The notes under the pieces: model-generated
What the model was told of the DNA's origin: nothing
Seen by the model: the letters and a program-made list of their open reading frames with translations, nothing else
Databases searched by the model: none
Program-made: the position numbers and the translations under genes
In this document: positions 1,540-26,063 of the stretch, piece by piece
Numbering within the stretch: the first letter of the stretch is position 1
Layout: each line of letters opens with the position of its first letter
Source of the DNA: Cyanophora paradoxa CCMP329
Lineage: Eukaryota; Plantae; Glaucophyta
Direction of reading: 5' to 3'
DNA: 26,063 nucleotides
Assembly (NCBI GenBank): GCA_004431415.1
Contig: QPMI01000274.1
Coordinates: 1 to 26,063 of the forward strand

Positions 1540-3382
1540 TCAGCCGCGAGGCGGCGGCGCCGACGATGGCGGCTGAGATGAACGGAATGTAAACCACGCC
1601 CGCGGCCGCAGCTGTGGAGTCCATGTGAAGGCCTGCGAAACGACAAGCGATTCCGGTTTCAGCCCGAGGTATTCTTAAGCTTTGTATCGAACGGAAATTC
1701 AAAAAGGCGAAACACACGTTCAGCAACGTGAAATCCGCCTGCGTTAAAACATTGGTCTCGTCAGCATTTGTGCAACTACTAATGGTACAATCTTATAATT
1801 AAGTACATGTACAGGAATCGGATATCGACGACGCACGAAAATGCCGATGGGGCTGCTGAACCGAAGGGTGTAGCTCGTGCTTGGAGTAAAAGCATCCGCA
1901 GGCTGCAGCATGTGACCCATGATCAGCATGTGAATAAAAATTGATTTTCATTCAAATCCGCAATATATATATAATGCTTTCGAATTCCCATTCACGCACC
2001 GCCAGCACAGAGCGCTTTGCACTGCGTCCGTTATTCACGTTGACGTTAACATTGCATGCCGAGACAGATGGTATGCCTGCACGCGAACGTGCCACTGTCA
2101 CGCGTACGACCCCCTCGCGCGCGTCGATGTCTTGCGGCGCAACGCACGGAACGTAATTAGAGTCGAGCTGACGATCGTGCCGTTGATGGCCTTGCACTCG
2201 CGATTGTTGGTTCCGGATCCGGACACGATGAACACGTCGATGCTCGCAGGATGGGGACCGGGGAAGTTCTGCGAAATCAATCACGTGTGACTGCTTGAAC
2301 GTGAAAAATATATAAAGAAACAATCATGCATGTATGGGGGATTCGTTTTCAAAAATCGAGCTCACCTCTCCCGTGACACTAACCTCGCCGCCACCCGCCT
2401 GAGGGCACGAACAACGGGCGTCCTGACGTCCGCCGTGTTGGTGACGGGGTCGAAGGCGAGGTTGAAGCTCGCGCCAATGCCCTGCACGACGATCCTGGTG
2501 ATGTTCTGCGCACGCGCAGGAGGTCAGAGGCAGCGCCGCCAGGAGAACTTCAGTTTCTAGTCAGCTGCGCGTGCGGTTTGGAGCGCGCACCAAACGCGGC
2601 GGCTTGGGCGTGGCCGTTGGCGAAGGGGAGGGGCTCGGGGAAGGAGTGGCCGCGGCCGTGGCGGACGGCGATGTCGCAGGCGTCGGGGACGGAGTCGTCA
2701 GGGCCGCCGGGGAAGGCGTCGCCGAAGGGCTGGGCGTCGACGAGGGGCTGGGGCTGGCCGACGGCGTCGCGCTCGGGCTCGGGCTGGGCGAAGGCGTCGG
2801 GGGGTCCGCGCAGGCGCCGTTGACGACCGTTTTGCCCGCCGCGCAACAGAAGTTGGAGACGTTGACGAGGGGCGGCTGGCAGATGCACACGGGGCGCATC
2901 GCCGCGAACCAGTAGCCCGCGGGATCGGAGGCGACGAAGCGGTCGCGCTCTGGGAAGCAAGCCGCCGGGCGCGAGTTGACGTTTTCAAGGGTATCGAATG
3001 CCGAATCCCATTTTGGTTTGCCGAGTGCATCTGGGTTATCATACGGACTGACGTCGCTGTCGATTGCATTTGTGCAGTTGTACGTAGTGAGAATCTCCTG
3101 CCCGGCGGTGCAATTTGTTTTGATGCAGTAGCTCTCGCCATCGAACTGCTGCACCATGCCCCCGGCATCGACGCAGTCGAGGGATGAACACTGTAAGCAG
3201 TCCGTCGTATCGCCTGGGTTGATGATGATGGAGCGGTCGTATTCCGCGCATTGTGAGCACTTGCCGAAGACCGGCGCCGGAGCAAACGCCGCCACGTATA
3301 CGACGATGATGGACACTGAGAGCTCGAGCGCCCGCCGCAGCTGAACCGAGGCCCGCGCCACCGGCCGCGCGCGCCGTCCCAT
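1540..3382 (-). CDS. Multi-exon secreted/cell-surface protein: signal peptide, Cys-rich domain, Pro/Ser/Thr stalk, IPT/TIG-like beta domain
   Basis: ATG at 3382. Exon 1 (3382-2591, 264 codons) has a hydrophobic N-terminus ([20 protein letters not shown]), 14 Cys, then [10 protein letters not shown] repeats. Further GT-AG bounded exons read [20 protein letters not shown] / [25 protein letters not shown] / [19 protein letters not shown] / [22 protein letters not shown] / ADFTLLN / [16 protein letters not shown] (stop 1540-1542). If the last intron is retained the stop is at 1484. The exon 2 donor is uncertain. Confidence 0.75.
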
Positions 3383-3850
3383 CGCTGAGATTCGAGTCGA
3401 GGAGAAGCTGCAGCTGATCAATATCGATATCGACCAATATGGTCTCTAATACTCTCTACTATAATTATGGAGAAGTCATTGCTAGTCAAGCTTAAGCCTT
3501 TTTCGCTCATGAACGGCGGACTCGCCGAGTCGGGAGGTCGAAGGCCGCTGCGACCCTGTGCCGCAGTGCGGGCTGCACTGCGGCCGCTGCGGCGAATCAT
3601 TGAATTGGCCGGGCAACGTTGACGTGCCAACGTTCAACGGTCACCGGTTAACTTGCCGAATTGGCAATTCTTAACACCTCGGAGACTCGAGCTCGGATCC
3701 CGGAGTCTAACTTCTCCCGATCGATACGAGTATATCATCCCATGATGATCAGCCCAACCCCCTTATGTGCGCGATTCGTGCCTTCTCCGATCAGCCCTAA
3801 CTTAGTGAGTCAATGAGTAGGCTAGTAGCCTACCGCCAGTGGTCCGCCAC

Positions 3851-4239
3851 TAGGGTTGCCTGTCAATTGACATGTCAGTCTACCCTGTGGACATTGACAT
3901 CGGACATTTGACATGTCAACCGACATGTCAATTGACATTGATTATTATATTATATTATATTATATTATATTCCAAAAGTGAGGCGGCGGGCAGCTTGGGC
4001 GAGGTCCTCAGCGCCTCCCCGCTGCCCTCTGCCTCCTTCCTAACATCAGAAACGTGCTGCTAACGCTTGCAGAGTGCTGCTTACATGTTTTTAATCATGA
4101 TTTGCATGCGTTTTGGCTTGTTTGGAGGGGTATCCCCCCAATGTCAATGGACATGTCAACCGGACCCGTGGACATTGACATGACATGTCAACTGACATTG
4201 ACATGTCAATGTCAATTGACATCGGACACGGCAACCCTA
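3851..4239. mobile_element. hAT-type non-autonomous element (MITE 1), 389 bp
   Basis: TIR TAGGGTTGCC (3851-3860) / GGCAACCCTA (4230-4239). Perfect 8-bp TSD TCCGCCAC (3843-3850, 4240-4247). Subterminal TGACA/TGTCA (TGACATGTCA) clusters at both ends. Confidence 0.92.
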
Positions 4240-4287: not shown

Positions 4288-4627
4288 TAGAGGTGGGGCT
4301 CGAGCGCAAATCGGCGGCTCGAGCCGGGCTCGAGCCGACACCCCTCGAGCCGCGGGCCGGCTCGAGCCGCCCGAGGTCGGGGTACACAGTCCTCGCCTTA
4401 TATAATATTCGATATATATAACAAAAACCTATATACAATAGCTAGCCGGCTCGCCGGCTCGCCGGCTCGCCCATAACAAAACCCGACCTGGCTCGAGCCA
4501 GCCGCGCCATACCCCTCGAGCCGGCTTGCTCGAGCCGGCCCGCGTGGCCAGAGGTCCGGCTCGACCGGCCGGCCCCTCGGCCCGGCCCGGCCCGGCTCGA
4601 GCCAGCCCGGCTCGAGCCCCACCTCTA
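4288..4627. mobile_element. hAT-type non-autonomous element (MITE 2), 340 bp
   Basis: Perfect 18-bp TIR TAGAGGTGGGGCTCGAGC / GCTCGAGCCCCACCTCTA. 8-bp TSD with 1 mismatch (GTAGTAGG 4280-4287; CTAGTAGG 4628-4635). Many GGCTCGAGCC palindromes around an AT-rich core. Confidence 0.88.
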
Positions 4628-4973: not shown

Positions 4974-5619
4974 CAGTGCTGTCATTATAATGTACGTTTA
5001 TAATTAATGACATTATTTAATGCCCATGAAGTACATTAATTATAAACCGGCGTAAATAATGGACATTATTTAATGTGGGGGGGTATTTTTGGCGCGAAGT
5101 TGATCTCTGACCTTCTAACAGCTTAACAGAGCCGCCGGAACGCTTTAAATCACTGTCGGAGTGGTTCTCGCTGCCTTGGAGAGGTCGACGTGTTGGAGGG
5201 GGTATACGTACATCGACCCCATCCCTTGGCGTGGCGGAGCTGAAGGGGGGCGCACGATCAACGCTCAAACGTTCTATATAAGCCGATAAACACTTCCTTG
5301 AAACTTAGGAAGGCTTTACAAGCTTACAAGCAACTTAGGAAGGCTTAGTTGAGGTGCTAGCTGGATGAGTCTCAGTGAGGCCTTCCTGCAGCTGGGGCCG
5401 GGGCTCCAGGCCTAGGCCATCTCCAGCCTGCCAGGAGGGTCATAAACGACTAGGGACATGCTCTTGCGCCGTTAGATAGTGTTCGCAGCGCCAAAGACGA
5501 GCGGAAAGTGCGTTTAAACGTAATTAATGAGTATTTAATATAATAATACATTATAATACATTATAATGCCTCATTAAATAATGCCCGACCTCCCGTGTCC
5601 ATTATAATGAACAGCACTG
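4974..5619. mobile_element. hAT-type non-autonomous element (MITE 3), 646 bp
   Basis: TIR CAGTGCTGT-CATTATAATG / CATTATAATGAACAGCACTG (one-base gap). Subterminal CATTA/TAATG arrays. The left flank GTACTACT (4966-4973) recurs at 5628-5635, displaced by 8 bp. Confidence 0.8.
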
Positions 5620-6449: not shown

Positions 6450-6767
6450 TCTGACCGGCGATCGCTTGCGCAGGAGCTGCTTCAAGTTCGTCGCACCAGC
6501 CAACGCCAACGCCTGCAGTGCGTGCCCGCCTCCCGTAGCGCTGCGAGCTTGCTCGCATAGAGATTCTCTATTCAATTGGATCGCTAGATCTGCCCCGCGC
6601 ATAGAGCCTTCTCATTGCTCGGCGATCGCTTTGTGTTCGGCGCCATACCCAGCGAGTCCGACCTCTAACAAAGAGCTGCTGGGCCGGCGATCGCTTCTGG
6701 GTTCTCAGTTCTAACGGTCGCCGCGGGCTTGACGTCCACCGCCTTCTCATTGGCCAAGCGATCGCTG
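6450..6767 (+). repeat. 318-bp direct repeat block R (copy 0), upstream of the Myb-like gene
   Basis: By eye identical to 11515-11832 (tctgaccggcgatcgc...ggccaagcgatcgctg). GCGATCGC at 6458, 6622, 6687 and 6758. Confidence 0.95.
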
Positions 6768-7060
6768 AACTTGGATGAATGGGCAATAGGTGGTAGCCAG
6801 GTGCTGCTTGACCCCCGGTTTCTGGGCGGCGCGATCGAGGGAGTTCCTGGACACGGTTTTACTTTTACAAGCTGTGCGGAATGCATGCTCGTTGCTTTGG
6901 CGAAGAAGCGTGGTCGCTCTGGGAGTTCTCGCGAGTGCTGGTGTTCTTCTTGGGTACAGCTACCCCGCCAATTACCTGTACCCAGAGGAGCGCCAACGTA
7001 CACTTTCAGAGCGTCCAGAGCGCCAGATACGGCATCGCATTCGCATGCTTCACGAAGGAC

Positions 7061-8928
7061 ATGGAGTTCCGTCTGCCGCCCGACCCGTTCGGGCCACCGG
7101 GACAGCCGCCTGCGCCAGCGCGGCCGTCTGAGCTTCCAGCTCCGACCTGGTGGGTTGCTGTGCTTTGAACATGCTTCTTGCTTCTTACTTGTGTCAGGCG
7201 ACCGCCGGCTCCGCCGCCTCTTCGGGCCGCGCCACAAGTTCACGGGTTGAACATGCCCTCGCTCGCAGCCTCATTCAGTGCGCCCGTACGACTTCAGTGT
7301 GCGTGAAGAACCTTTGTTTTCACAGTTCCGCCTCATCCGGTCGCGCCCGACTGCTGTAGCTAACTTCGTCGCCGCAGTGCCGTTGCCGTTTCCATCGCTT
7401 CTGGGGCCGCCGGGCCAGAACATCTGGCTCGAGAAACGTGCGCTTTTGCATGCTTGACTCGCCGGTTCGCTTAAACGCGACCGCAGGCGTCCAGTCGGGC
7501 CGTCCGTGGGGAACAAGGCCGTCCCACTTGTCGCCCAGAGCTCAGTACATGGCGCCCCGTGCGCATCTCCGTGCTCCGCGTTTGTGTTTGCCATGCTTAT
7601 AATGATGTTCCGCAGCGCTCCTGGCGCCCCTGCGCCGTCACTTGCTCCGCTTGCGAAGTGGGTTCTTTCCCATTTAAGCTCTTCTCTTGCACGGTTTTGC
7701 GCTGACGCGTTCGCCGGCAGGCGGGCGAAGAGCGATGACAAAGGAGCCAAGTCAGTTGCTTTCCGGTACTTTTGTCCCGACTTCCACCCTGTTCCTCGAT
7801 GCACAGCCTTACTCTTCTTCCTTTTCCTTTTCACAGGTGTGACTGGATGGGCTTTCCGGCGGCTGTTACTCTCATGATCAGCTGCATCGTCGATATCGGA
7901 TTGGAACTGAGGCTCAAGGATACCGCCAGGAACACTGTCGAAACAGATCATGTCACCCAAGCTTTCAACAAGTTTCTTGCCCAAGGTGTCCTGGTACGCT
8001 GACACGGTTGCATTTTCTTCAAGGCTTTGTCTCTGACATGCTTCCCAGCGGGACAACATCAGGCCCTTCGTCCTGGATTTGCAGGGGCTCGACATGTCGG
8101 CAGGGCGCACGAAGTTCCTCCGCAGGTGGCAGAAGGTGGTCAAGTACTACCGCATCTACAACGAAGCAGAGAAGAGCGGAAAGAAGCTCACAGATGCAGA
8201 TTTCCCGTTGAACTTCCAGCTCACACCACAAGACTACATGGTACCCGTCCTGCTCTGCTCCCGACAGCGTGTTCTGGCTGATCACGACGTGATACACTAG
8301 AAAGTCAAGCCCTATCTTGATGGTGCGCCAGAGGAGAACCCACATTACTCAATGGAGTCCGATGGAGATCGGGTTTGCGAAGATTGTGTTTTAATTCCGT
8401 ACCCCCCCGTTGACTTTTTCTGCAGGATCTTCACCCAGTACCGGCTTCATGGCTCCCCTCCTCACAGCTGCAGGAGGAGGGGTCAAGCTCGAGGTGTGCA
8501 CTGTCTTCCTTTCTTCTATCTCTACTGCTGCATGCCTTCAACTGATTTTCTTGCAGTTCCAGCCCCGCAAAGCCGGGGCGCCCGCCCAGGCCTGGCGAGG
8601 GATTGCGAAGTCGCAAATCAACAAGCGCAACCCAACTCAGGTGGCAGCTGAGGGGATGTCAAAGCTTTCAGCCAGTGTTGACCGGGTTGGAGATCAGCTC
8701 AGCCGCAGCAATGAACTTCGTGAACGGGCAGCCGAAGAGCGGGCGGCGGAGGCTAGGGAACGGGCAAAGTTCCGTCGGTTTCTGGTGCATTCTGCAACTG
8801 CTATACTCTTGCTCAGTTCTTTCTTTATTTTACCCACACAGATGGAGCAAGCTAAGAAGAAGGAGGGGCTGGACAAGCGTCCCCGTGAGCCGGGCCCAGA
8901 CTCGGACCAGGAGGGGACGCTATCCTAA
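7061..8928 (+). CDS. Harbinger-associated Myb/SANT-like (trihelix) DNA-binding protein, multi-exon; start and some splice phases uncertain
   Basis: Spliced reading: Pro-rich N-terminus (MEFRLPPDPFGPPGQPP), then R|CDWMGFPAAVTLMISCIVDIG..DHVTQAFNKFLAQGVL|GLDMSAGRTKFLRRWQKVVKYYRIYNEAEKSG (trihelix-like W...RW..V.K.Y pattern). A C-terminal coiled coil follows (SASVDRVGDQLSRSNELRERAAEERAAEARERAKF). At least one indel is probably needed near 8615. Its position next to the transposase supports the call. Confidence 0.7.
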
Positions 8929-8941
8929 CCACTGGAGGCCG

Positions 8942-10573
8942 CTACTGGAGGCCGTACAGGTGGTCCACCTGCCAGTCCCGCTCGGCCTTCGCCTCATTCT
9001 GCTCAGCTTGGTTGGGGGGGGCGTGCCCCTGTGCTGCTCCGCCCGGTGCGTCTCCCTCAGCAGCCTGGTCCAGCGGCCACACATCGTCTCCCAGCTCACA
9101 GACGTTGTGCAGTAGGAAGCACACCTGTTCCGATGCATGTCACATATCAATCTGAAGTGCACGGTTGGTGCTTACATAGATAGTTTGGCACGCCCGACCA
9201 AGGTTCTTGCGGTTGATCCCGGCTTCAAGCTCGAGCCATCTCATCTTCAATCTTCCAAATGCTCGCTCGATGACCTTCCTGCACATTGAATGCACGAAAT
9301 CAAAGTTTCTTTTTGCCAGACCGAGGCCACCAACAATATCTGGTGGCATTTGGTCAGAACCCTTGCTGTACCCCCCCCCTTCTGTAGTACATGTGCCTCA
9401 CCGTGAATGCTGTGTGGGGGAATGCATCCCTTCTCCATGCGGTACCCTCGATCAACAAGCCTGTAATCACCGTCGCTATAGATCATGTTCCGCCCCTTGT
9501 GAAGTCTTGAGTTGTCATACACCCTCTGATCGTGCACGCTCCCTGGATATTTAATGCTCACCTGCTTTCTCATTAGGGCGCAGTACTTGCACTCTTTCAA
9601 CTCACTCACATCATTAAAAACACCATTTGCATTGCAGGCTGCTTGAACATTCAGAGACTTCCTTCCTTTGCGACTGAAGAACTTCGTCCGATGCTGCTGA
9701 GGAGGGTTCTCGATCACGATAAGGGTTCCATCTGAAACAAATATGCATGTCACAATGTACTCGGCACATTGCCTTCGCAAAAAAAATGCTTGCCGACAGC
9801 TCCGACACACTTGGTGAAACCTGTCGCATAGAAGTTCCTTTTGTTCCAGTACTTTGCCAGACTCTCAAATCCAGCTCGAGCCCTGGCCTTCTGCTCTGGG
9901 TACGCGGGAAAAGATCTTGCATATGTGTCTTTCGAAACATCTCACATATGGCTGCCTGCGTGCGGGAAAGCGCTGCAGTCGAACAACACAGTGAGGATCA
10001 AATTAAATACAGAATCGAGGTACCTCACTGAAATCAGCAAACTCACCCTCAGCAATGAAGCCCTGAGATACAGGGAAGTCTCCTTGGAGTGCTTCATAGC
10101 CTGTCCGCTGGCCAAGACGCCTCAGTGTGATTGCAAGCTGCAGTTCCACGGATTGCTGAGCAACATTCCCCCTGGACTTGTATACCCAGCTGTGCTGGAT
10201 TCGATCGTGAATATACGTGAAGGTCGTCACGGTCATGCGAAAAGCCCAGAAGAATTTGGCATCGTAGTCGCCTGCGAACGAAGGCTTTTTTTTGAGGGGG
10301 GAGGAACTTGGGAGAGCTACGCGCAGCCAACGCACCATCCACGATGCGATCAATCATCTCATGCCACCATGTGTGCATTCGCGGCTGGCGGGGACGCCTC
10401 GCCTGCGCCAGAAGCTCCGCCGCCGTAGCCGCGGCTTCAGCGATCACACCGGCGGCCTCCTCCTCGAGCTCCATAGCATCGTCCTCGTCATCATCATCGT
10501 CATCGTCGTCTAGTTCCGCTTTCGCCAGCTCGAAAAGCTCATCCAGATCGGCGTTCAGCAGCGCGTCCCCCAT
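8942..10573 (-). CDS. PIF/Harbinger DDE transposase (HARBI1-like, DDE_Tnp_4), 7 exons, ~423 aa, one frameshift
   Basis: Exons 10573-10336, 10271-10047, 9972-9794, 9731-9610, 9561-9402, 9339-9176, 9124-8942. Motifs: DYDAKFFWAFRMTVTTF, VELQLAITLRRLG, GFTKCVGAV-DGT-LIVI, FFSRKGRKSLNVQAAC, YPGSVHD, LVDRGY, HSMCRKVIERAFGRLKMRW, LLHN. Exons sum to 1271 nt; one base is missing at the GGG 9898-9900. Confidence 0.93.
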
Positions 10574-11410
10574 CGCCGTCACGCGAGATCTGGTATCCCT
10601 CGCGGCCGCGGTGGGCTCCTCGGTCTTTGCTGTCGTTCTTCGGTCGTTCTTCGCGCCCTCACTTACCTCTTCGTACGGCCTCAGAGCTTCCGAGACGACG
10701 ACGGCGTTGCTGGCGGTGGGCCGCGGTCGTGTGTGTGCTGGACAAGGGAGGCTTCGCTGGAAACAGGACGCCGTCGTTTCGGCGACACAAACCCCCACTA
10801 CAACGGCGCGGGTCGCGGTGCATCCCTTCCTGTCTGTCCGCTCTCACGCAGCCAACCGCCACTCATTCTTTCCTGCACGGCCACCTCATCTGCCGTCAGG
10901 CTTTCACGGCGGTGAGCTCGACAGCATCGTCTCTTGCGCCCATCTGACGTGTCTCCGGTGCGCGGGCTGCGCTGGGGCCCGACTCTGTCCGCGCGCGCGC
11001 CGTGCTCAGCCCCGCGGCGCCACGCCCGCCCCGCAGGCGACTTCGCCGCGCCCGCGCACGCGAGGAGTACACATCGCTCGCTTCATCGGCTCACCCGCGG
11101 CGCCGGCGGCGCGCTAGCTACACGCTTTCGCTTGTCCGAGGTTCACATCATCGAATTCTGCAGCCGTCGCCCCTTCCTCGGCCGCTGTAAGGCGGCGCGC
11201 AGGGATTCGATCTCTCAACCATGGCGTCGCCCGGCGGGCCCAGCGCAAGCAGCTCTGAGTCAGTAGGTACGTCCCGGAACCGCCCCTCGGACCTGCCTGG
11301 GCGCGCTTTCTTCCGATCCTTCTAAAAAGCGTGTTTTCGGAGCGAAATTTTGGCACTATGTTCACTATGCCCGCCGGCCGTGGGCTCGGATCTGGCCGGG
11401 GCCTTTTTCA

Positions 11411-11832
11411 AGCGATCGCCGGCGCCGCGTCCGTCGTCCGACGGTTCGCGCTGGCGATCGCCCCGGAGTACTCGGTACCAGGGCCTAGCGATCGCCGGAG
11501 CGATGAGAAGGCTCTCTGACCGGCGATCGCTTGCGCAGGAGCTGCTTCAAGTTCGTCGCACCAGCCAACGCCAACGCCTGCAGTGCGTGCCCGCCTCCCG
11601 TAGCGCTGCGAGCTTGCTCGCATAGAGATTCTCTATTCAATTGGATCGCTAGATCTGCCCCGCGCATAGAGCCTTCTCATTGCTCGGCGATCGCTTTGTG
11701 TTCGGCGCCATACCCAGCGAGTCCGACCTCTAACAAAGAGCTGCTGGGCCGGCGATCGCTTCTGGGTTCTCAGTTCTAACGGTCGCCGCGGGCTTGACGT
11801 CCACCGCCTTCTCATTGGCCAAGCGATCGCTG
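11411..11832. promoter_or_regulatory. GCGATCGC palindrome cluster including R copy 1 (11515-11832); putative bidirectional promoter or protein-binding array
   Basis: Seven perfect GCGATCGC (11412, 11454, 11488, 11523, 11687, 11752, 11823). The composite motif AGAGCCTTCTCATYGCTC(C)GGCGATCGCT occurs forward (11668-11695) and inverted (11487-11515). Lies between the divergent transposase and gene X. Function is inferred. Confidence 0.6.
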
Positions 11833-11863
11833 CTTTTCGGTGTCTTATGCCCGACTGCGCAGC

Positions 11864-14800
11864 ATGTCGACCCAGGAGCACACTCTTTGGGAGGAAGAGA
11901 TGGAGTGGACCTCCAGCTCATCTCCCAACCCCTTCTGGCGGGCCGCGCGGCGGGTGGTGGCCTCGTGGGCGGCCTCGGGGGCGGCTCCGGCCTTGAGCTT
12001 GTCCCCGCCCCTCCCCCTCCCGGGCCCGCCCTCCCCCGGCCCCGCCCCTCCCCCGGCCCGTCCCTCCCCCGGGCCCGCCCTCCCCCGGGCCCGTCCCTCC
12101 CCCCGGCCCGCCCCTCCCCGGGCCCGCCCCTCCCCCGGGCCGCCCCTCCCCCGGCCGCCCCCCCCCGCCCCCCCCCTCCCCCGGCCCCGCCCCTCCCCCG
12201 GGCCCGCCCCTCCCCCCGGGCCCGCCCCTCCCCCGGGCCCGCCCTCCCCCGCCCCCCCCTCCCCCCGGCCCGCCCCTCCCCCGGGCCCGTCCTCCCCCGG
12301 CCCCGCCCCTCCCCCGGGCCCGCCCCCCCCGGCCCTGTCCCTCCCCCTCCCCCCGGCCCGGTGCGCGGCGCGGGAGGCGGCGCGGGAGGCGGCGCGGGAG
12401 GCGGCACGGGAGGCGGCGCGGCGGGTGGCGCCCTGGACGGCGCAGCGGGCGGCGACGCTGGTGGCGCTGGCAGAAGGCGACAAGCACATGCACCCTTCGA
12501 GATCTGTGCGTTTCTCTGTGAAATCTGCACGCCGCCTCTTTGTCTTATCATGTTTGCAGATCTGGACCCCAAGTGCATTATGTGGAGGACATCATCGTCG
12601 ACCTGCCCCTGCCAGATGCTTGCGTGCACTGCGCAACCTGTTGTGGGCACAAAGGGAGCGTTTCGAGGCCCCAAATTTCAGAGTTGTGTTGATTGGCTTG
12701 ATGAGGTGCTCTGCAGCTCAAAGAATTGATCGAATGGAATCTAAGACCAACTTCTCCAGGTGACAGAAGCGGCTCGGCAAGCTCAGGCGAACGCTGTCGG
12801 TTGCAGTTTCGAGGTGAACCAGCAAAGAACCGGACACGGACACTGGAGGATCTCCATGCTCTGAAGCACTTCATGAGCACTGTGCGTCCTCGATCTTCTT
12901 TAGCTTGAGATTCGCCATGAGATACTGCATTTAGGTCGCACTCGAATCGCCAAGCCTTCAGCGCACCGGTCCCGACCCTCATCCAGATGCTGATATAGCT
13001 GCTGGCGACAAGGAAGATACCTCAAGCTCTTCTCAACTCGATGAGCTCATTGATATGGACGTAAGCATCTATCTTTCTTGCCAGTTGAAGCACGGCACTC
13101 ACTGCAGGCACAGTGTGCATTTCTGGGCCTTGGCGTGCCAGGGCGCACGGTGAGTTTGCAGTGGATACGGACCTTCGAGCCAGGCACTACGACTGGCTAA
13201 AGCCCGGGTGACGAGCTTCTATACCAACAAGATCTACATCCGTGAGAGACGACTGCGAGAGATAGATCTGGCACGTGTCCATGCCAGCTTGCCTCGTGCT
13301 TCTTCTGCTTACTTGCTGCCCGGTCAGGTCATCTTGTCTCTGGACTTTCAGGAGGGCAAGGATGACACAAGTACTAGCGATGACAAACGATCATACGCTG
13401 TTGAATCGAAGATGTTCCTATCGCTCTGGATAGAGGTGTTCTTCTACGGGCGATCGAGCAATTCATCACTCGATTTCTACAGTACGTCCCTTCAAATCAC
13501 TGCATTCTATTTTGAAAACCGAAATGTGATGCAGCCCCTGATGATGGCGAGATCCGCTCAGCTGCTGCTGTGCTCACACAGCTTCTGGCCCTGCGGCCAG
13601 GAGACGCTGAGTTGGACCGTGAGCCTGCACGGCACAAGGTCTTGCAAATGCTTTCATGGAGGTGCACGATGCTTTCATGCTCTGTCTTTTCGTAACATGT
13701 TCTTAATTTTATATTAGGTCACAAACGGACAGTCTGAAATCACCTTCTGCGTATGCAAGCGACTCTCGGGCTCAGCCAGCAAGCAATGTACCTTGGCACG
13801 AAGGAAGAAATGAAGGGCCAGTTCCGCAGTCTCGCTCAATCAGTGCACGCAGCACAGCAGCAGACACGGGAAGGCGAATCACTCCAGCTGTGGTATGCAT
13901 CCGGGGGGGGGGGGGGGGGGGGGGGGGGGGAAAGTTTTTTTTTTTACCAATGGCGACGCAGGCTTCATGCATGTGTGGAGCTTGCAGCAGCAGCTGCAGA
14001 GGCCGCGTTGGTGGAAGAGTTGCCACGTGGGAAGGGCGGAAGCGCAAGGCGCAGGACGATCTCGTGTCGTACCCGGAGGTGAAGAAGCTTCTTCGGAAGT
14101 GCAACGCGTACGGAGGCAACAGGGATGTCGGTCGTGGCGGCAAGATTGCAAGCGATGTGCAGGTCCTGCAGGTTGTTCGGAAGAGCGGCAAGGAGCTTCT
14201 TCGCCTTCTTGCAGGGCCGGCAAGCAGCATATCAGTCGGCATTATCTTCTCAGACCTTGTCCGCAAATCGCGTTTTCGGCGGTGGGCGACATTGCCAACC
14301 AGCTCATATTCAAAGGCCTTGTAGATCTAGCCAAGGCATTCGACGACGAGGAGCAGCGTGGGAGGCCGCGCGGCAAGCAGGTCAAGACCCAGGCCCGGCT
14401 CCCGAACAGGCGCCAAGTCCAATGGAGTTCGACTACCCCCCCCTCCAACCCCCCTCCCCCTTCGCTACGCGTACCCCCCCCCCCCGACACGTGGAGCTGA
14501 TGCGCGTACCCTGCCGTTCTCCACAGGCGTGCCACGAGGCAATGGGAAAACCCTGCCGTTCTCCACCACGAAGCGCCGGCGAACGAGCTCTTCACCCGGC
14601 TGCGCATGAAGCCAGAGCTGGCGGTGCGTGCGAGGGTACGAAGACGACGCCACAGAAGGGGTTACTGAACTCTAATTCCGGTGCAGGAGAAATACGGTAC
14701 AGGTCGCGCAGCGGAGAACAGCTTTCAGGCTCTGAAGCAAGTGGCTGCAGTGCTGGAACAGATGGGCTCCAAGTCAGATGTTCTAACACACCGGATGCTG

Positions 14801-15989
14801 AATGGGGGCAACGACTCTGGAGAGGAGTACCCCGAGGTGGACGAACTCGGCGCGACGGCATACAGGAGAACTACACGGAAAGTCCAACAGGTACGAGCAA
14901 CGGTTATCGCAAATGCTCAAGCTCACGAGAAACTCAGCCAAACGGCGCGGGACAATTGGTCGATGTGGACATCGATGTTGAGGCGTATGTGCCTCCGCCA
15001 TACACGAGCGAAACAAGCCTCTATGGCTAGGCACACCTGAGCGGCCTATTCCGACACCCATCCTGTCCTGCTTGTACAGACGGTCCGCGTACCCCCCTTC
15101 TCTTTTCTTTCTTTTCCTTTGTTTCTTTTCCTTCTTATTTCCCTTCTCCCGCTGAACGTGCTCTGACTTGGGCGCGTCGCAGCGTGGCGAACACCGAGAA
15201 CCGATACTTCAACGCGCTGAGCAATACCCTGAAGGCGAAACTGCACTGGTTCCCTGCAATGTCACGGGAGGAAGGAGGCTCCAGATCGGTACGGGGAGCA
15301 TCGCCGTGGTCGCAACCGCGATACGGGACGCGAGGGCAGCGAGCCCCGCAGCACGTGCGTACGTCGAGAAGCTGGCTCGCCTACCGCCAAACGACGGTGC
15401 ACTGGAGTGCACGGCCACGCAAGGTGCCGCGCGCTGCAGCGTCTCCAGTCAAGTGCACCGGCTTGATGTACCGGGAACAACACCGGAGGCAACAATGGTT
15501 ATCCTCCGGGGCTTCACCAATCTCGAGTGGGACCACTGGCCGTGCGCCTCTTCCTTTTTCTACTTGTGGTTTCCTTTTTTCTGTCCATGGATATCAGTAA
15601 CCACTCTTGCTGATTGCCTCGAGCTCATATATATCACGAGCAGAGTCACCATCAAGAGTCACGCCGCTGCATTAGTGCAGGCCCTCCTTCAGCTCTCGGA
15701 GCCTGTGCATGATATGACCTTCCACACGACCGCTGGCTCCATCTTCAAGGCAAGATGCCGAGCTGACCGCGTGCTCGAGATTCTTTTCTCGCCTCGATGG
15801 GGTCGGGTGGTATGCGCCGGGCACCACCAGCGCAGCCCAATGGACTGCGCACCATTTGTTGCGGTTGCGAAAGAATGGTTCCGCAAGCCGCTAGTGGCCG
15901 AGGAGGATCGGTTTGCTGACCCAGGTAGACTAGATGAGCTAGTGGAGCGGTGCAAGCAGTTTGTAGGGCCGCAGTTGAACTTCCAGTGA
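11864..15989 (+). CDS. Unknown multi-exon protein 'gene X', copy 1 (roughly 1000-1100 aa after splicing and indel correction)
   Basis: Consensus start MSTPGAHSLGGRDG, then a Pro/Gly-rich N-terminus. Regular short introns, e.g. 12506-12559, 12882-12934, 13061-13107, 13271-13327 (GC donor), 13482-13534, 13662-13717, 13893-13961, 14624-14686. These join open, protein-like exons (..RARHYDWLKARVTSFYTNKIYIRERRLREIDL|VILSLDF..; ..RKRKAQDDLVSYPEVKKLLRK..; ..LDELVERCKQFVGPQLNFQ*). Each copy has its own homopolymer frameshifts. No family recognised. Confidence 0.7.
12001..12420. repeat. C-rich minisatellite (CCCGCCCTCCCCCGG-like, ~16-18 bp) plus GGCGGCGCGGGA x4-5
   Basis: Directly visible; lies in exon 1 of gene X. 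The G-rich strand has dense G-runs. Confidence 0.9.
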
Positions 15990-16697
15990 GCGTAGAGTTC
16001 TTGAGCGCCTTGCAATTTGTGGAGCAAGTCAAATTTCGTCGATGTACCCCAGAGCCTTCGCTTTTAAGCCACCGAGCCCCCAAGTTTAGGGGGAATGAGT
16101 CGGGGGGTACCCCGACCTTCGAAAGTGAGGCGCGCGACGTCGACGCAAAGCTCGCGCAAAGCTCGCGCATAGCGCTTCGCAGCGCGCGCGCGTGCTCAGC
16201 CCGCGGCGCCACGCCCGCCCCGCAGGCGACTTCGCCGCGCCCGCGCACGCGAGGAGTACACATCGCTCGCTTCATCGGCTCACCCGCGGCGCCGGCGGCG
16301 CGCTAGCTACACGCTTTCGCTTGTCCGAGGTTCACATCATCGAATTCTGCAGCCGTCGCCCCTTCCTCGGCCGCTGTAAGGCGGCGCGCAGGGATTCGAT
16401 CTCTCAACCATGGCGTCGCCCGGCGGGCCCAGCGCAAGCAGCTCTGAGTCAGTAGGTACGTCCCGGAACCGCCCTCGGACCTGCCTGGGCGCGCTTTCTT
16501 CGATCCTTCTAAAAAGCGTGTTTTCGGAGCGAAATTTGGCACTATGTTCACTATGCCCGCCGGCCGTGGGCTCGGATCTGGCCGGGGCCTTTTCAAGCGA
16601 TCGCCGGCGCCGCGTCCGTCGTCCGACGGTTCGCGCTGGCGATCGCCCCGGAGTACTCGTACCAGGCCTAGCGATCGCCGGAGCGATGAGAAGGCTC

Positions 16698-17165
16698 TCT
16701 GACCGGCGATCGCTTGCGCAGGAGCTGCTTCAAGTTCGTCGCACCAGCCAACGCCAACGCCTGCAGTGCGTGCCCGCCTCCCGTAGCGCTGCGAGCTTGC
16801 TCGCATAGAGATTCTCTATTCAATTGGATCGCTAGATCTGCCCGCGCATAGACCGGCGATCGCTTGCGCAGGAGCTGCTTCAAGTTCGTCGCACCAGCCA
16901 ACGCCAACGCCTGCAGTGCGTGCCCGCCTCCCGTAGCGCTGCGAGCTTGCTCGCATAGAGATTCTCTATTCAATTGGATCGCTAGATCTGCCCCGCGCAT
17001 AGAGCCTTCTCATTGCTCGGCGATCGCTTTGTGTTCGGCGCCATACCCAGCGAGTCCGACCTCTAACAAAGAGCTGCTGGGCCGGCGATCGCTTCTGGGT
17101 TCTCAGTTCTAACGGTCGCCGCGGGCTTGACGTCCACCGCCTTCTCATTGGCCAAGCGATCGCTG
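16698..17165 (+). repeat. R block copy 2 with internal 150-bp tandem duplication (16701-16850 / 16851-17001)
   Basis: gaccggcgatcgcttgcgcagg...cccgcgcata occurs twice head-to-tail. Confidence 0.93.
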
Positions 17166-17196
17166 CTTTTCGGTGTCTTATGCCCGACTGCGCAGC

Positions 17197-20100
17197 ATGT
17201 CGACCCCAGGAGCACACTCTTTGGGGAGGAAGAGATGGAGTGGACCTCAGCTCATCTCCCAACCCCCTTCTGGCGGGCCGCGCGGCGGTGGTGGCCTCGT
17301 GGGCGGCCTCGGGGCGGCTCCGGCCTTGAGCTTGTCCCCGCCCCTCCCCCTCCCCGGCCCCGCCCCTCCCCCGGCCCCCGCCCCTCCCCCCGGGCCCGTC
17401 CCTCCCCCCGGCCGCCCCTCCCCCCGGCCCGTCCCTCCCCCGGCCCGCCCTCCCCCGGCCCGCCTCCCCCCGGCCCGCCCCTCCCCCCGGGCCGCCCTCC
17501 CCCGCCCCCCCCTCCCCGCCCGCCCCTCCCCCGGCCCGCCCCTCCCCCGGCCCGCCCTCCCCCGGGCCGCCCCTCCCCCCGCCCCCCCCCTCCCCCGGCC
17601 CGCCCTCCCCCGGCCCGTCCCTCCCCCGGCCCCGCCCTCCCCCGGGCCGCCCCCCCCCGGCCCTGTCCCTCCCCTCCCCCGCCCGGTGCGCGGCGCGGGA
17701 GGCGGCGCGGGAGGCGGCGCGGGAGGCGGCACGGGAGGCGGCGCGGCGGGTGGCGCCCTGGACGGCGCAGCGGGCGGCGACGCTGGTGGCGCTGGCAGAA
17801 GGCGACAAGCACATGCACCCTTCGAGATCTGTGCGTTTCTCTGTGAAATCTGCACGCCGCCTCTTTGTCTTATCATGTTTGCAGATCTGGACCCCAAGTG
17901 CATTATGTGGAGGACATCATCGTCGACCTGCCCCTGCCAGATGCTTGCGTGCACTGCGCAACCTGTTTGTGGGCACAAAGGGAGCGTTTCGAGGCCCAAA
18001 TTTCAGAGTTGTGTTGATTGGCTTGATGAGGTGCTCTGCAGCTCAAAGAATTGATCGAATGGAATCTAAGACCAACTTCTCCAGGTGACAGAAGCGGCTC
18101 GGCAAGCTCAGGCGAACGCTTGTCGGTTGCAGTTTCGAGGTGAACCAGCAAAGAACCGGACACGGACACTGGAGGATCTCCATGCTCTGAAGCACTTCAT
18201 GAGCACTGTGCGTCCTCGATCTTCTTTAGCTTGAGATTCGCCATGAGATACTGCATTTAGGTCGCACTCGAATCGCCAAGCCTTCAGCGCACCGGTCCCG
18301 ACCCTCATCCAGATGCTGATATAGCTGCTGGCGACAAGGAAGATACCTCAAGCTCTTCTCAACTCGATGAGCTCATTGATATGGACGTAAGCATCTATCT
18401 TTCTTGGCCAGTTGAAGCACGGCACTCACTGCAGGCACAGTGTGCATTTCTGGGCCTTGGCGTGCCAGGGGCGCACGGTGAGTTTGCAGTGGATACGGAC
18501 CTTCGAGCCAGGCACTACGACTGGCTAAAGGCCGGGTGACGAGCTTCTATACCAACAAGATCTACATCCGTGAGAGACGACTGCGAGAGATAGATCTGGC
18601 ACGTGTCCATGCCAGCTTGCCTCGTGCTTCTTCTGCTTACTTGCTGCCCGTCAGGTCATCTTGTCTCTGGACTTTCAGGAGGGCAAGGATGACACAAGTA
18701 CTAGCGATGACAAACGATCATACGCTGTTGAATCGAAGATGTTCCTATCGCTCTGGATAGAGGTGTTCTTCTACGGGCGATCGAGCAATTCATCACTCGA
18801 TTTCTACAGTACGTCCCCTTCAAATCACTGCATTCTATTTTGAAAACCGAAATGTGATGCAGCCCCTGATGATGGCGAGATCCGCTCAGCTGCTGCTGTG
18901 CTCACACAGCTTCTGGCCTGCGGCCAGGAGACGCTGAGTTGGACCGTGAGCCTGCACGGGCACAAGGTCTTGCAAATGCTTTCATGGAGGTGCACGATGC
19001 TTTCATGCTCTGTCTTTTCGTAACATGTTCTTAATTTTATATTAGGTCACAAACGACAGTCTGAAATCAACCTTCTGCGTATGCAAGCGACTCTCGGGCT
19101 CAGCCAGCAAGCAATGTACCTTGGCACGAAGGAAGAAATGAAGGGCCAGTTCCGCAGTCTCGCTCAATCAGTGCACGCAGCACAGCAGCAGACACGGGAA
19201 GGCGAATCACTCCAGCTGTGGTATGCATCCGGGGGGGGGGGGGGGCGAGGGGGGTAAAGTTTTTTTCTTACCAATGGCGACGCAGGCTTCATGCATGTGT
19301 GGAGCTTGCAGCAGCAGCTGCAGAGGCCGCGTTGGTGGAAGAGTTGCCACGTGGAAAGGGCGGAAGCGCAAGGCGCAGGACGATCTCGTGTCGTACCCGG
19401 AGGTGAAGAAGCTTCTTCGGAAGTGCAACGCGTACGGAGGCAACAGGGATGTCGGTCGTGGCGGCAAGATTGCAAGCGATGTGCAGGTCCTGCAGGTTGT
19501 TCGGAAGAGCGGCAAGGAGCTTCTTCGCCTTCTTGCAGGGCCGGCAAGCAGCATATCAGTCGGCATTATCTTCTCAGACCTTGTCCGCAAATCGCGTTTT
19601 CGGCGGTGGGCGACAATTGCCAACCAGCTCATATTCAAAGGCCTTGTAGATCTAGCCAAGGCATTCGACGACGAGGAGCAGCGTGGGAGGCCGCGCGGCA
19701 AGCAGGTCAAGACCCAGGCCGGCTCCCGAACAGGCGCCAAGTCCAATGGAGGTTCGACTACCCCCCCCTCCAACCCCCCCTCCCCTTCGCTACGCGTACC
19801 CCCCCCCCCCGACACGTGAGCTGATGCGCGTACCCTGCCGTTCTCCACAGGCGTGCCACGAGGCAATGGAAACCCTGCCGTTCTCCACCACAAGCGCCGG
19901 CGAACGAGCTCTTCACCCGCTGCGCATGAAGCCAGAGCTGGCGGTGCGTGCGAGGGGTACGAAGACGACGCCACAGAAGGGGTTACTGAACTCTAATTCC
20001 GGTGCAGGAGAAATACGGTACAGGTCGCGCAGCGGAGAACAGCTTTCAGGCTCTGAAGCAAGTGGCTGCAGTGCTGGACAGATGGGCTCCAAGTCAGATG

Positions 20101-21303
20101 TTCTAACACAGCCGGATGCTGAATGGGGGCAACGACTCTGGAGAGGAGTACCCGAGGTGGACGAACTCGGCGCGACGGCATACAGGAGAACTACACGGAA
20201 AGTCCAACAGGTACGAGCAACGGTTATCGCAATGCTCAAGCTCACGAGAAAACCTCAGCCCAAACGGCGCGGGACAATTGGTCGATGTGGCATCGATGTT
20301 GAGGCGTATGTGCCTCCGCCATACACGAGGCGAAACAAGCCTCTATGGCTAGGCACACCTGAGCGGCCTATTCCGACACCCATCCTGTCCTGCTTGTACA
20401 GACGGTCCGCGTACCCCCCTTCTCTTTTCTTTCTTTTCCTTTGTTTCTTTCCTTCTTATTTCCCTTCTCCGCTGAACGTGCTCTGACTTGGCGCGTCGCA
20501 GCGTGGCGAACACCGAGAACCGATACTTCAACGCGCTGAGCAATACCCTGAAGGCGAAACTGCACTGGTTCCCTGCAATGTCACGAGGAGGAAGAGGCTC
20601 CAGATCGGTACGGGGGAGCATCGCCGTGGTCGCAACCGCGATACGGGACGCGAGGCAGCGAGCCCCGCAGCACGTGCGTACGTCGAGAAGCTGGCTCGCC
20701 TACCGCCAAACGACGGTGCACTGGAGTGCACGGCCACGCAAGGTGCCGCGCGCTGCAGCGTCTCCAGTCAAGTGCACCGGCTTGATGTACCGGGAACAAC
20801 ACCGGAGGCAACAATGGTTATCCTCCGGGGCTTCACCAATCTCGAGTGGGACCACTGGCCGTGCGCCTCTTCCTTTTTCTACTTGTGGTTTCCTTTTTTC
20901 TGTCCATGGATATCAGTAACCACTCTTGCTGATTGCCTCGAGCTCATATATATCACGAGCAGAGTCACCATCAAGAGTCACGCCGCTGCATTAGTGCAGG
21001 CCCTCCTTCAGCTCTCGAGCCTGTGCATGATATGACCTTCCACACCCGCTGGCTCCATCTTCAAGGCAAGATGCCGAGCTGACCGCGTGCTCGAGATTCT
21101 TTTCTCGCCTCGATGGGGTCGGGTGGTATGCGCCGGGCACCACCAGCGCAGCCCAATGGACTGCGCACCATTTGTTGCGTTGCGAAAGAATGGTTCCGCA
21201 AGCCGCTAGTGGCCGAGGAGGATCGGTTTGCTGACCCAGGTAGACTAGATGAGCTAGTGGAGCGGTGCAAGCAGTTTTAGGGCCGCAGTTGAACTTCCAG
21301 TGA
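17197..21303 (+). CDS. Gene X copy 2
   Basis: Same exon/intron series as copy 1; ATG 17197, TGA 21301-21303; different indels. Confidence 0.65.
17335..17745. repeat. C-rich minisatellite, unit 2
   Basis: Homologous to 12001-12420. Confidence 0.88.
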
Positions 21304-22015
21304 GCGTAGAGTTCTGAGCGCCTTGCAATTTTGTGGAGCAAGTCAAATTTCGTCGATGTACCCCAGAGCCTTCGCTTTTAAGCCACCGAGCCCCCAAGTT
21401 TAGGGGGGAATGAGTCGGGGGGGTACCCCGACCTTCGAAAGTGAGGCGCGCGACGTCGACGCAAAGCTCGCGCAAAGCTCGCGCATAGCGCTTCGCAGCG
21501 CGCGCGCCGTGCTCAGCCCCGCGGCGCCACGCCCGCCCCGCAGGCGACTTCGCCGCGCCCGCGCACGCGAGGAGTACACATCGCTCGCTTCATCGGCTCA
21601 CCCGCGGCGCCGGCGGCGCGCTAGCTACACGCTTTCGCTTGTCCGAGGTTCACATCATCGAATTCTGCAGCCGTCGCCCCTTCCTCGGCCGCTGTAAGGC
21701 GGCGCGCAGGATTCGATCTCAACCATGGCGTCGCCCGGCGGGCCCAGCGCAAGCAGCTCTGAGTCAGTAGGTACGTCCGGAACCGCCCCTCGGACCTGCC
21801 TGGCGCGCTTTCTTCCGATCCTTCTAAAAAGCGTGTTTTCGGAGCGAAATTTTGGCACTATGTTCACTATGCCCGCCGGCCGTGGGCTCGGATCTGGCCG
21901 GGGCCTTTTTCAAGCGATCGCCGGCGCCGCGTCGTCGTCCGACGGTTCGCGCTGGCGATCGCCCCGGAGTACTCGGTACCAGGGCCTAGCGATCGCCGGA
22001 GCGATGAGAAGGCTC

Positions 22016-22335
22016 TCTGACCGGCGATCGCTTGCGCAGGAGCTGCTTCAAGTTCGTCGCACCAGCCAACGCCAACGCCTGCAGTGCGTGCCCGCCTCCC
22101 GTAGCGCTGCGAGCTTGCTCGCATAGAGATTCTCTATTCAATTGGATCGCTAGATCTTGCCCCGCGCATAGAGCCTTCTCATTGGCTCGGCGATCGCTTG
22201 TGTTCGGCGCCATACCCAGCGAGTCCGACGTCTAACAAAGAGCTGCTGGGCCGGCGATCGCTTCTGGGTTCTCAGTTCTAACGGGTCGCCGCGGGCTTGA
22301 CGTCCACCGCCTTCTCATTGGCCAAGCGATCGCTG
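22016..22335 (+). repeat. R block copy 3
   Basis: Near-identical to 11515-11832, with a few indels and substitutions. Confidence 0.93.
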
Positions 22336-22365
22336 CTTTTCGGTGTCTTATGCCGACTGCGCAGC

Positions 22366-22631
22366 ATGTCGACCCCAGGAGCACACTCTTTGGGAGGAAG
22401 AGATGGAGTGGACCTCCAGCTCATCTCCCAACCCCCTTCTGGCGGGCCGCGCGGCGGGTGGTGGCCTCGTGGGCGGCCTCGGGGGCGGCTCCGGCCTTGA
22501 GCTTGTCCCCGCCCCTCCCCCTCCCCCGGGCCCCGCCCCTCCCCCGGCCCGTCCCTCCCCCCGCCCTCCCCCCGGGCCCGTCCTCCCTCCCCGGGCCCGC
22601 CCCTCCCCCCGGCCCGGGCCCGCCCTCCCCC

Positions 22632-22685
<54 letters not shown>

Positions 22686-22689
22686 CCCG

Positions 22690-22726
<37 letters not shown>

Positions 22727-25700
22727 CCCCGGCCCCGCCCCTCCCCCCGGGCCCGTCCCTCCCCCCGGGCCCGCCCCTCCCCCCGGGCCCGTCCCTCCCC
22801 CCGGCCCCCCCCCCTCCCCCCGGCCCCGCCCCTCCCCCCGGGCCCGTCCCTCCCCCGGCCCCGCCCCTCCCCCGGGCCGCCCCCCCCCCCGGCCCTGTCC
22901 CTCCCCCTCCCCCCGGCCCGGTGCGGCGCGGGAGGCGCGGCGCGGGAGGCGGCGCGGGAGGCGGCACGGGAGGCGGCGCGGCGGGTGGCGCCCTGGACGC
23001 GCAGCGGGCGGCGACGCTGGTGGCGCTGGCAGAAGGCGACAAGCACATGCACCCTTCGAGATCTGTGCGTTTCTCTGTGAAATCTGCACGCCGCCTCTTT
23101 GTCTTATCATGTTTGCAGATCTGGACCCCCAAGTGCATTATGTGGAGGACATCATCGTCGACCTGCCCCCTGCCAGATGCTTGCGTGCACTGCGCAACCT
23201 GTTTGTGGGCACAAAGGGAGCGTTTCGAGGCCCCAAATTTCAGAGTTGTGTTGATTGCTTGATGAGGTGCTCTGCAGCTCAAAGAATTGATCGAATGGAA
23301 TCTAAGACCAACTTCTCCAGGTGACAGAAGCGGCTCGGCAAGCTCAGGCGAACGCTTGTCGGTTGCAGTTTCGAGGTGAACCAGCAAAGAACCGGACACG
23401 GACACTGGAGGATCTCCATGCTCTGAAGCACTTCATGAGCACTGCGTCCTCGATCTTCTTTAGCTTGAGATTCGCCATGAGATACTGCATTTAGGTCGCA
23501 CTCGAATCGCCAAGCCTTCAGCGCACCGGTCCCGACCCTCATCCAGATGCTGATATAGCTGCTGGCGACAAGGAAGATACCTCAAGCTCTTCTCAACTCG
23601 ATGAGCTCATTGATATGGACGTAAGCATCTATCTTCTTGGCCAGTTGAAGCACGGCACTCACTGCAGGCACAGTGTGCATTTTGGGCCTTGGCGTGCCAG
23701 GGGCGCACGGTGAGTTTGCAGTGGATACGGACCTTCGAGCCAGGCACTACGACTGGCTAAAGGCCCGGGTGACGAGCTTCTATACCAACAAGATCTACAT
23801 CCGTGAGAGACGACTGCGAGAGATAGATCTGGCACGTGTCCATGCCAGCTTGCCTCGTGCTTCTTTGCTTACTTGCTGCCCGGTCAGGTCATCTTGTCTC
23901 TGGACTTTTCAGGAGGGCAAGGATGACACAAGTACTAGCGATGACAAACGATCATACGCTGTTGAATCGAAGATGTTCCTATCGCTCTGGATAGAGGTGT
24001 TCTTCTACGGGCGATCGAGCAATTCATCACTCGATTTCTACAGTACGTCCCCTTCAAATCACTGCCATTCTATTTGAAAACCGAAATGTGATGCAGCCCC
24101 TGATGATGGCGAGATCCGCTCAGCTGCTGCTGTGCTCACACAGCTTCTGGCCCTGCGGCCAGGAGACGCTGAGTTGGACCGTGAGCCTGCACGGGCACAA
24201 GGTCTTGCAAATGCTTTCATGGAGGTGCACGATGCTTTCATGCTCTGTCTTTTCGTAACATGTTCTTAATTTATATTAGGTCACAAACGGACAGTCTGAA
24301 ATCAAACCTTCTGCGTATGCAAGCGACTCTCGGGCTCAGCCAGCAAGCAATGTACCTTGGCACGAAGGAAGAAATGAAGGGCCAGTTCCGCAGTCTCGCT
24401 CATCAGTGCACGCAGCACAGCAGCAGACACGGGAAGGCGAATCACTCCAGCTGTGGTATGCATCCGGGGGGGGGGGGGGGGCGGAGGGGGGTAAAGTTTT
24501 TTTCTTACCAATGGCGACGCAGGCTTCATGCATGTGTGGAGCTTGCAGCAGCAGCTGCAGAGGCCGCGTTGGTTGGAAGAGTTGCCACGTGGGAAACGGA
24601 AGCGCGAAGCGCAAGGCGCAGGACGATCTCGTGTCGTACCCGGAGGTGAAGAAGCTTCTTTCGGAAAGTGCAACGCGTACGGAGGCAACAGGGATGCGGT
24701 CGTGGCGGCAAGATTGCAAGCGATGTGCAGGTCCTGCAGGCTGTTCGGAAGAGCGGCAAGGAGCTTCTTCGCCTTCTTGCAGGGCCGGCAAGCAGCATAT
24801 CAGTCGGCATTATCTTCTCAGACCTTGTCCGCAAATCGCGTTTTCGGCGGTGGGCGGACAATTGCCAACCAGCTCATATTCAAAGGCCTTGTAGATCTAG
24901 CCAAGGCATTCGACGCAGAGCGAAGCAGCGTGGGAGGCGCGCGGCAAGCAGGTCAAGACCCAGGCCCGGCTCCCGAACAGGCGCCAAGTCCAATGGAGGT
25001 TCGACTACCCCCCCCCCTCCAACCCCCCTCCCCTTCGCTACGCGTACCCCCCCCCCCCGACACGTGGAGCTGATGCGCGTACCCTGCCGTTCTCCACAGG
25101 CGTGCCACGAGGCAATGGGAAACCCTGCCGTTCTCCACCACGAAGCGCCGGCGAACGAGCTCTTCACCCGGCTGCGCATGAAGCCAGAGCTGGCGGTGCG
25201 TCGGGGGTACGAAGACGACGCCACAGAAGGGGTTACTGAACTCTAATTCCGGTGCAGGAGAAATACGGTACAGGTCGCGCAGCGCGAGAACAGCTTTCAG
25301 GCTCTGAAGCAAGTGGCTGCAGTGCTGGAACAGATGGGCTCCAAGTCAGATGTTCTAACACACCGGATGCTGAATGGGGGCAACGACTCTGGAGAGGAGT
25401 ACCCCGAGGTGGACGAACTCGGCGCGACGGCATACAGGAGAACTACACGGAAAGTCCAACAGGTACGAGCAACGGTTATCGCAAATGCTCAAGCTCACGA
25501 GAAACTCAGCCAAACGGCGCGGGACAATTGGTCGATGTGGACATCGATGTTGAGGCGTATGTGCCTCCGCCATACACGAGGCGAAACAAGCCTCTATGGC
25601 TAGGCACACCTGAGCGGCCTATTCCGACACCCATCCTGTCCTGCTTGTACAGACGGTCCGCGTACCCCCCTTCTCTTTTCTTTCTTTTCCTTTGTTCTTT

Positions 25701-26063
25701 TCCTTCTTATTTCCCTTCTCCCGCTGAACGTGCTCTGACTTGGGCGCGTCGCAGCGTGGCGAACACCGAGAACCGATACTTCAACGCGCTGAGCAATACC
25801 CTGAAGGCGAAAACTGCACTGGTTCCCTGCAATGTCACGGGAGGAAGGAGGCTCCAGATCGGTACGGGGGAGCATCGCCGTGGTCGCAACCGCGATACGG
25901 GACGCGAGGGCAGCGAGCCCCGCAGCACGTGCGTACGTCGAGAAGCTGGCTCGCCTACCGCCAAACGACGTGCACTGGAGTGCACGGCCACGCAAGGTGC
26001 CGCGCGCTGCAGCGTCTCCAGTCAAGTGCACCGGCTTGATGTACGGGAACAACACCGGAGGCA
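22366..26063 (+). CDS. Gene X copy 3 (3' end beyond the window)
   Basis: ATG 22366; same exon series; truncated by the window edge. Confidence 0.62.
22505..22980. repeat. C-rich minisatellite, unit 3, with long pure poly-C runs
   Basis: Homologous to 12001-12420; pure C runs at ~22634-22722 may be base-calling collapse. Confidence 0.85.

Follow-up and report, generated by a model that had tools for sequence, protein, structure and literature searches.

The locus analyzed here raises the question of how the genes of a Harbinger transposon came to stand in a row with several copies of a large and unrelated gene. Harbingers are usually regarded as solitary two-gene elements, and they duplicate 3 bp of the target site on insertion (the target site duplication, TSD), usually TWA. 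In a contig of the glaucophyte Cyanophora paradoxa CCMP329 (QPMI01000274.1, positions 1 to 26,063, hereafter the window), the first-pass annotation had noted a repeated block followed once by a pair of Harbinger genes and otherwise by an intron-rich gene, termed here gene X, which was proposed to be a third gene of the same element.

Self-comparison of the window recovered the 318-bp block (R) at starts 6450, 11515, 16698, and 22016, with 98-100% identity among copies, along with a second common block (S; 10991-11514, 16182-16697, and 21498-22015) that ends every internal unit, the Harbinger unit included. The common sequence at each internal junction starts 524 bp before R, and the units follow one another in the order R-Harbinger core-S, R-X-S, R-X-S, and R-X, the last being cut by the window end. 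R is composed of a 154-bp spacer (TCT...ATA) and the 164-bp left end of an element, and the array consists of one 4.9-kb transposase element followed head-to-tail by three near-identical X elements of ~5.0 kb (Table 1). Given this composition, R is neither the shared upstream control block nor the cassette recombination module that it had been suggested to be. Once S and a terminal inverted repeat (TIR) had been found, the views of R as an enhancer acting by itself or as a linker between cassettes were likewise dropped. In the window X is not a third gene within one TIR pair; it occupies its own TIR-bounded unit.

Table 1 Features of the array in the window.
Feature	Position	Strand	Remarks
Spacer at array head	6450..6603	+	154 bp, TCT ... 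ATA
Transposase-encoding Harbinger element	6604..11514	+	4,911 bp; TIR GAGCCTTCTCAT / ATGAGAAGGCTC
Left end common to all units	6604..6767	+	TIR and three GCGATCGC motifs
Partner gene, multi-exon	6801..8928	+	Trihelix/Myb-like by eye only; start uncertain
Harbinger-type DDE transposase	8942..10573	-	~7 exons, with a single frameshift near 10290
End of an exon in DNA specific to the transposase element, then 79-nt GT-AG intron into S	10927..11036	+	Intron 10958-11036
Right end S common to all units	10991..11514	+	524 bp; three GCGATCGC motifs, TIR
Spacer 2	11515..11668	+	154 bp; contains 44-nt exon 11539-11582
X element 1	11669..16697	+	5,029 bp; same ends, without transposase
Gene X copy 1	11863..15989	+	14 exons inside element; Pro/Gly-rich repeat 12003-12421
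Double spacer	16698..17001	+	Two spacer copies joined ATA/GACCGG
X element 2	17002..22015	+	5,014 bp; contains gene X (17196-21303) with a polyA site at 21354
Junction-spanning model	21725..22365	+	Splices seen on variant contigs
Spacer 4	22016..22170	+	
X element 3	22171..26063	+	Interrupted by window end

Block S terminates in the right TIR at 11514, 16697, and 22015, and its perfect inverse lies 154 bp inside R, at 6604, 11669, 17002, and 22171. The TIRs are perfect over 12-13 bp and extend imperfectly to about 28 bp (about 24/28 matching); inverted matches of R to the end of S reach 14 bp, whereas none of 200 shuffles gave more than 11. The motif GCGATCGC was matched 27 times where 1.1 matches were expected, and 26 of the 27 matches fall in the ends and spacers (R and S), where they represent 7 independent sites and point inward (left, GGCGATCGCT; right, AGCGATCGCC). 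The common ends and TIRs that had been anticipated are present; the anticipated TWA duplication was not seen, the units being flanked by ATA and TCT. Neither a matching TSD pair nor a solo insertion was found within the window, and the right end of the array lies beyond it.

Two joints are irregular. At the array start, homology to the other units opens exactly at the TCT of 6450, which corresponds to the TCT trailing the right TIR at other units, and the third R copy carries an additional 150-bp duplication (16701-17003) that forms the double spacer. Both joints sit exactly at the TIR edge with one trinucleotide remaining, and they look like the loss of one unit plus one trinucleotide, making the double spacer a candidate empty site of an excised unit. 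Excision of mPing has been described as leaving such joints (PMC4561436); the clean-excision reading draws on these two joints within the window.

Other elements precede the array in the window: a 389-bp hAT-like MITE (3851-4239; ends TAGGGTTGCC, perfect 8-bp TSD TCCGCCAC), a 340-bp MITE with 17-bp TIRs, many CTCGAG motifs, and 8-bp flanks matching at 7/8 positions (4288-4627), and a 646-bp element with ends CAGTGCTGT, AT-rich subterminal repeats, and no clear TSD (4974-5619). An open reading frame on the minus strand (2561-3421) encodes 286 amino acids, Cys-rich and probably secreted, with a Pro-Ser/Thr repeat stalk and no Pfam match.

The minus-strand gene of the first unit is a DDE_Tnp_4 transposase (PF13359, E 2e-15), with three exons tiling profile positions 3-44, 46-93, and 112-149 and the expected acidic residues present by eye; its frameshift lies in a homopolymer run and is likely an assembly error. 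The partner gene stops 13 bases from the transposase stop, so the two form a tail-to-tail pair. It appears trihelix-like by eye at 7838-8240, and its Myb domain, split by an intron, gave no Pfam or NCBIfam match in an exon-by-exon search. Of the Harbinger pair assigned to this interval, the transposase is borne out by its profile, and the second gene is putatively Myb-like, as judged by eye. For the start of the partner gene, a phase-0 acceptor is available at 6800 and an in-frame ATG at 6881; the sequence behind this acceptor (6800-6873), 33 bases past R, opens with a DPR motif like the start of X. The Myb-like gene may use the same junction exons as X. Two word searches with transposase pieces returned no close relatives. 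Presumed RNA runs contain 41-45% of the sequence words of 6800-16100; X exons can supply at most 31% of the words of this interval, and S and R at most 9%. Some of the Harbinger core is therefore probably in the RNA too.

The later intervals do carry a large intron-rich gene, as had been proposed, and this gene is spliced and expressed. X comprises about 1,100 codons, including two junction exons described below, and opens with a Pro/Gly-rich stretch, followed by helical middle parts in which a basic patch is conserved and by a C-terminus that contains Cys and His. Each of two presumed RNA runs from different studies yielded one 2.3-kb contig with 11-12 listed splice joints over X; after allowing for assembly errors, ten joints fit GT-AG and one GC-AG, and the GC-AG intron (13270-13327) is used in both runs. 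The RNA letter count from exon 7 to exon 13 is 1,181 in both contigs, one below the open frame; the variant of X that is expressed may carry a frameshift near exons 11-12 and hence possibly be truncated. At 19291-19720, DNA contigs contain 26 extra letters in exon 11 relative to the window and a T>C change absent from the RNA, and they apparently represent a second full-length X variant, not the expressed one. A hole in the DNA runs at 19804-21067 carries no evidential weight.

For reading frames and local comparison, we used a cross-copy majority sequence of X. Among 1.8 billion representatives, a homolog was found in one sample only (Logan contig L001 of SRR31724264), matching nearly the whole gene, with 49% identity over 605 residues, shared intron positions, and a conserved basic GKGRKR patch. 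The comparison gave a pN of 0.36 and a pS of 0.74 (pS being nearly saturated and one mis-framed exon pair barely counted), and, judged from this sequence pair, X appears to be under purifying selection. In two runs the homolog contig stops at the same base, 15 nt past the stop codon, as if at a repeat (L001:3323-3338).

Searches for the identity of X returned no Pfam, PHROGs, or NCBIfam match (exon-wise, with limited power), no significant match in PDB sequences, phages, or viral, metagenome and prokaryote contigs, and no trusted match in the ESM Atlas, where a weak ubiquinol-cytochrome c chaperone match at 0.90 had low recognition. A match to P0003 (E 4e-4) was rejected as the chance match of a repeat protein. 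AlphaFold models of X reached a pLDDT of 39-41, which makes the fold searches (best Z 4.7) meaningless. Several enzyme families were considered. An Ulp1/C48 protease was rejected, since the candidate His and Gln of the His-Asp-Gln-Cys set are not kept in the homolog and neither Pfam nor PDB gave a match; a Fanzor/TnpB nuclease was rejected for want of a profile match and of a RuvC-III-like motif by eye. In the comparison with HNH nucleases, EWDHWP and C-x-x-HH are conserved in X and the homolog, with no HNH profile match and with models at the same low pLDDT. Pieces of X gave no Pfam match to a SET or TET/JBP domain in the exon-wise search of limited power. X is an orphan, conserved, expressed gene for which these searches returned no family or fold.

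The RNA runs also bear on how X is transcribed. Both contain a GT-AG joint (21768-22038) that leads from a donor in S (21771) to an acceptor in the spacer (22039), crossing the right TIR. In run X20, the piece 22038-22083 was assigned by depth arithmetic to the same depth-72 contig, which exits at the 22084 donor to a variant X-type start that DNA also shows, at 22356-22383. The corresponding model consists of an exon in S (21725-21770), an intron over the right TIR (21771-22039), an exon in the spacer (22040-22083), an intron over the left end (22084-22364), and the X start at 22365. In three further X20 contigs, sequence like 10927-10954, present in the transposase element only, is joined across a GT-AG intron to the equivalent of the 11036 acceptor; these contigs overlap the depth-72 contig and are not necessarily from the same molecule. 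The junction-splice contigs belong to a sister subfamily, possibly a deleted derivative, rather than to exact window copies, and they show neither transcript start nor strand, the latter being taken from splice sites only.

In the window itself, S at junction 1 offers an ATG at 11221 and the exon 11221-11266 of the junction-spanning model. Neither the 46-nt S exon nor the 44-nt exon of the spacer contains a stop, and at each of the three window junctions they lead into X in phase 0; they are not strictly required because X has an internal in-frame ATG. Since the sister-subfamily contigs splice from S through the spacer to an X-type start, and others begin in transposase-element DNA, X is probably driven from its upstream neighbor element in the sister subfamily and, as we infer, in the window copies. 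The proposed link between X and the transposon genes has held up and is closer than had been suggested: the same pair of element ends flanks X, and the sister-subfamily splices join the right end of the transposase element to an X-type start. A deep RNA contig of 1,846 nt at 21872-22052 (depth 524; the other run has a comparable variant at 747) carries an S end that is 94% alike, followed by the junction and 37 letters of the spacer, and continues into unrelated sequence; we read it as an additional member of the family whose spacer or cargo is different.

DNA word depths, which are uncalibrated sums over contigs and not copy numbers, were 2,766 and 1,364 on X in two runs; S and the left end were deeper than X by a factor of 10-17, and the spacer by a factor of 31-43. 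For R the uncalibrated excess over X is roughly 10-14x, as expected for ends common to many derivatives. A deletion derivative, about 1.76 kb long and diverged in its 3' sequence (joint 17840-21102, a 3,261-bp deletion), was found in both DNA runs and one RNA run.

We consider it reasonably probable that the array represents a PIF/Harbinger family with two same-ended kinds of unit in head-to-tail trains, one encoding the transposase and the Myb-like protein and the other a non-autonomous X unit, X being a passenger of its upstream neighbor. The transposase would act in trans on the shared ends, that is, the 12-bp TIR, and the partner protein would likely bind to the GCGATCGC motifs. The X units could have been multiplied by unequal exchange among the recurring ends, and clean excision of single units could have produced the double spacer and the array start. 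A predicted bidirectional promoter would serve the transposase on one strand and the gene of the next unit on the other, so that a plus-strand transcript would begin head-to-head with the transposase, cross the right end, and be spliced via the spacer exon to the X start. As a role for X, we tentatively propose a nuclear chromatin or anti-silencing helper of the family; a passenger host gene is a somewhat weaker candidate, a nuclease or other catalytic aid is rather doubtful, and other roles account for the remainder.

The same junction data could be taken further. It is possible, though on balance unlikely, that genes of this family are split across the element's own ends, with the promoter and first exons in the right end and spacer and the rest behind the left end, and that X is a new kind of helper on a separate same-ended unit. 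If so, X, and perhaps the Myb-like gene too, would be complete only in a head-to-tail train or a circle.

More doubtful is a different left end for the same family, in which the unit would begin at GACCGG (6453), the "spacer" would lie inside the element, and TCT would be a strictly preferred 3-bp target. TCT would then remain once between neighbors after double insertion and unequal exchange, and the neighbor would supply just exon 1 and the promoter. TCT is indeed found at the array start and at every S-R joint, the spacer holds one oriented GCGATCGC motif and is deeper in DNA than the ends, the diverged 1,846-nt RNA contig retains the junction and the first 37 spacer letters, and TSD-separated dimers are known (bioRxiv 10.1101/158386). 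However, only 2 terminal bases of GACCGG match the right end, versus 12 for GAGCC, and the double-spacer joint lacks TCT, so that a separate event would be needed.

It is improbable that X is a captured host gene carried as passive cargo of the Pack type, with the junction splicing a product of read-through from the transposase promoter and chance splice sites. Pack-PIF elements are known (PMC8903248), and X has 13 ordinary short introns and signs of purifying selection; but Pack elements carry mostly gene fragments, whereas X is whole, its homolog is confined to a single sample among the 1.8 billion representatives, no host-type flank of X occurs among the loose ends listed, and two subfamilies have preserved both the splice sites and the phase. 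An assembly stutter that turned a single copy of X into three is very improbable: the copies do differ almost entirely by 1-nt indels, as is typical of long-read errors, but the word depth of X, the existence of variants and of a deletion derivative, and the 150-bp difference at junction 2 argue against it, and the end structure stands at any copy number.

The array is a real, unusual variant within the PIF/Harbinger superfamily. As in Ping/mPing and Nuwa, a DDE_Tnp_4 transposase is accompanied by a second gene, a short G-starting TIR, subterminal motifs, deletion derivatives, and apparently clean excision; unlike in those systems, no TWA TSD was seen, the units form trains with a conserved 154-bp spacer, and the partner element bears a whole expressed gene of 1,100 codons. 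An additional gene is also associated with the transposase in the three-gene Harbingers HarbingerS (SET domain) and PHISTA (TET/JBP), where it is part of the autonomous element and carries a recognized enzyme domain (PMC12730594), whereas X lacks a known domain and is set apart from the transposase by a right TIR, the spacer, and a left TIR. Coding DNA other than a transposase is enclosed here by the TIRs of the family, as it is in Pack-TYPE elements (Pack-PIF, Pack-MULE), of which neighboring same-orientation insertions can move as one (PMC8903248); unlike their fragments, X is a whole conserved gene with no host source among the loose ends listed. An outer-end composite containing both transposase and X is possible.

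Tandem units expanded by unequal exchange recall the head-to-tail arrays of P, hobo, and Bari1 (bioRxiv 10.1101/158386), which consist of a single element with one TSD between units, whereas in the present array the ends are common to two types of element and exons lie within the junction. Dependence of expression on an upstream neighbor or on joined ends is known from Drosophila HeT-A/TAHRE (PMC2615633) and from the IS2/IS911 junction promoters (PMC3219604), the former retrotransposons and the latter bacterial insertion sequences, in contrast to a eukaryotic cut-and-paste element with spliced exons across its TIRs. VANDAL elements with their VANC anti-silencing proteins (PMC5735166) likewise combine an element-borne extra protein with a short repeated motif in non-coding element DNA; no sequence similarity to X was found, and anti-silencing by X is a candidate role. 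Additional genes in Harbingers, Pack-PIF elements, and tandem arrays are already known separately. In the literature searched, we found no description of junction-dependent expression in eukaryotic cut-and-paste elements, nor of an extra gene combined with same ends, a tandem train, and exons over a TIR junction.

Should expression normally proceed through the junction-spanning transcript, the tandem arrangement would be part of the life cycle of this family, as it is for HeT-A or the IS junction promoters. DNA transposons of C. paradoxa are reported to be CpG-methylated (PMC12344493), and in such a genome X is a testable candidate for counter-silencing.
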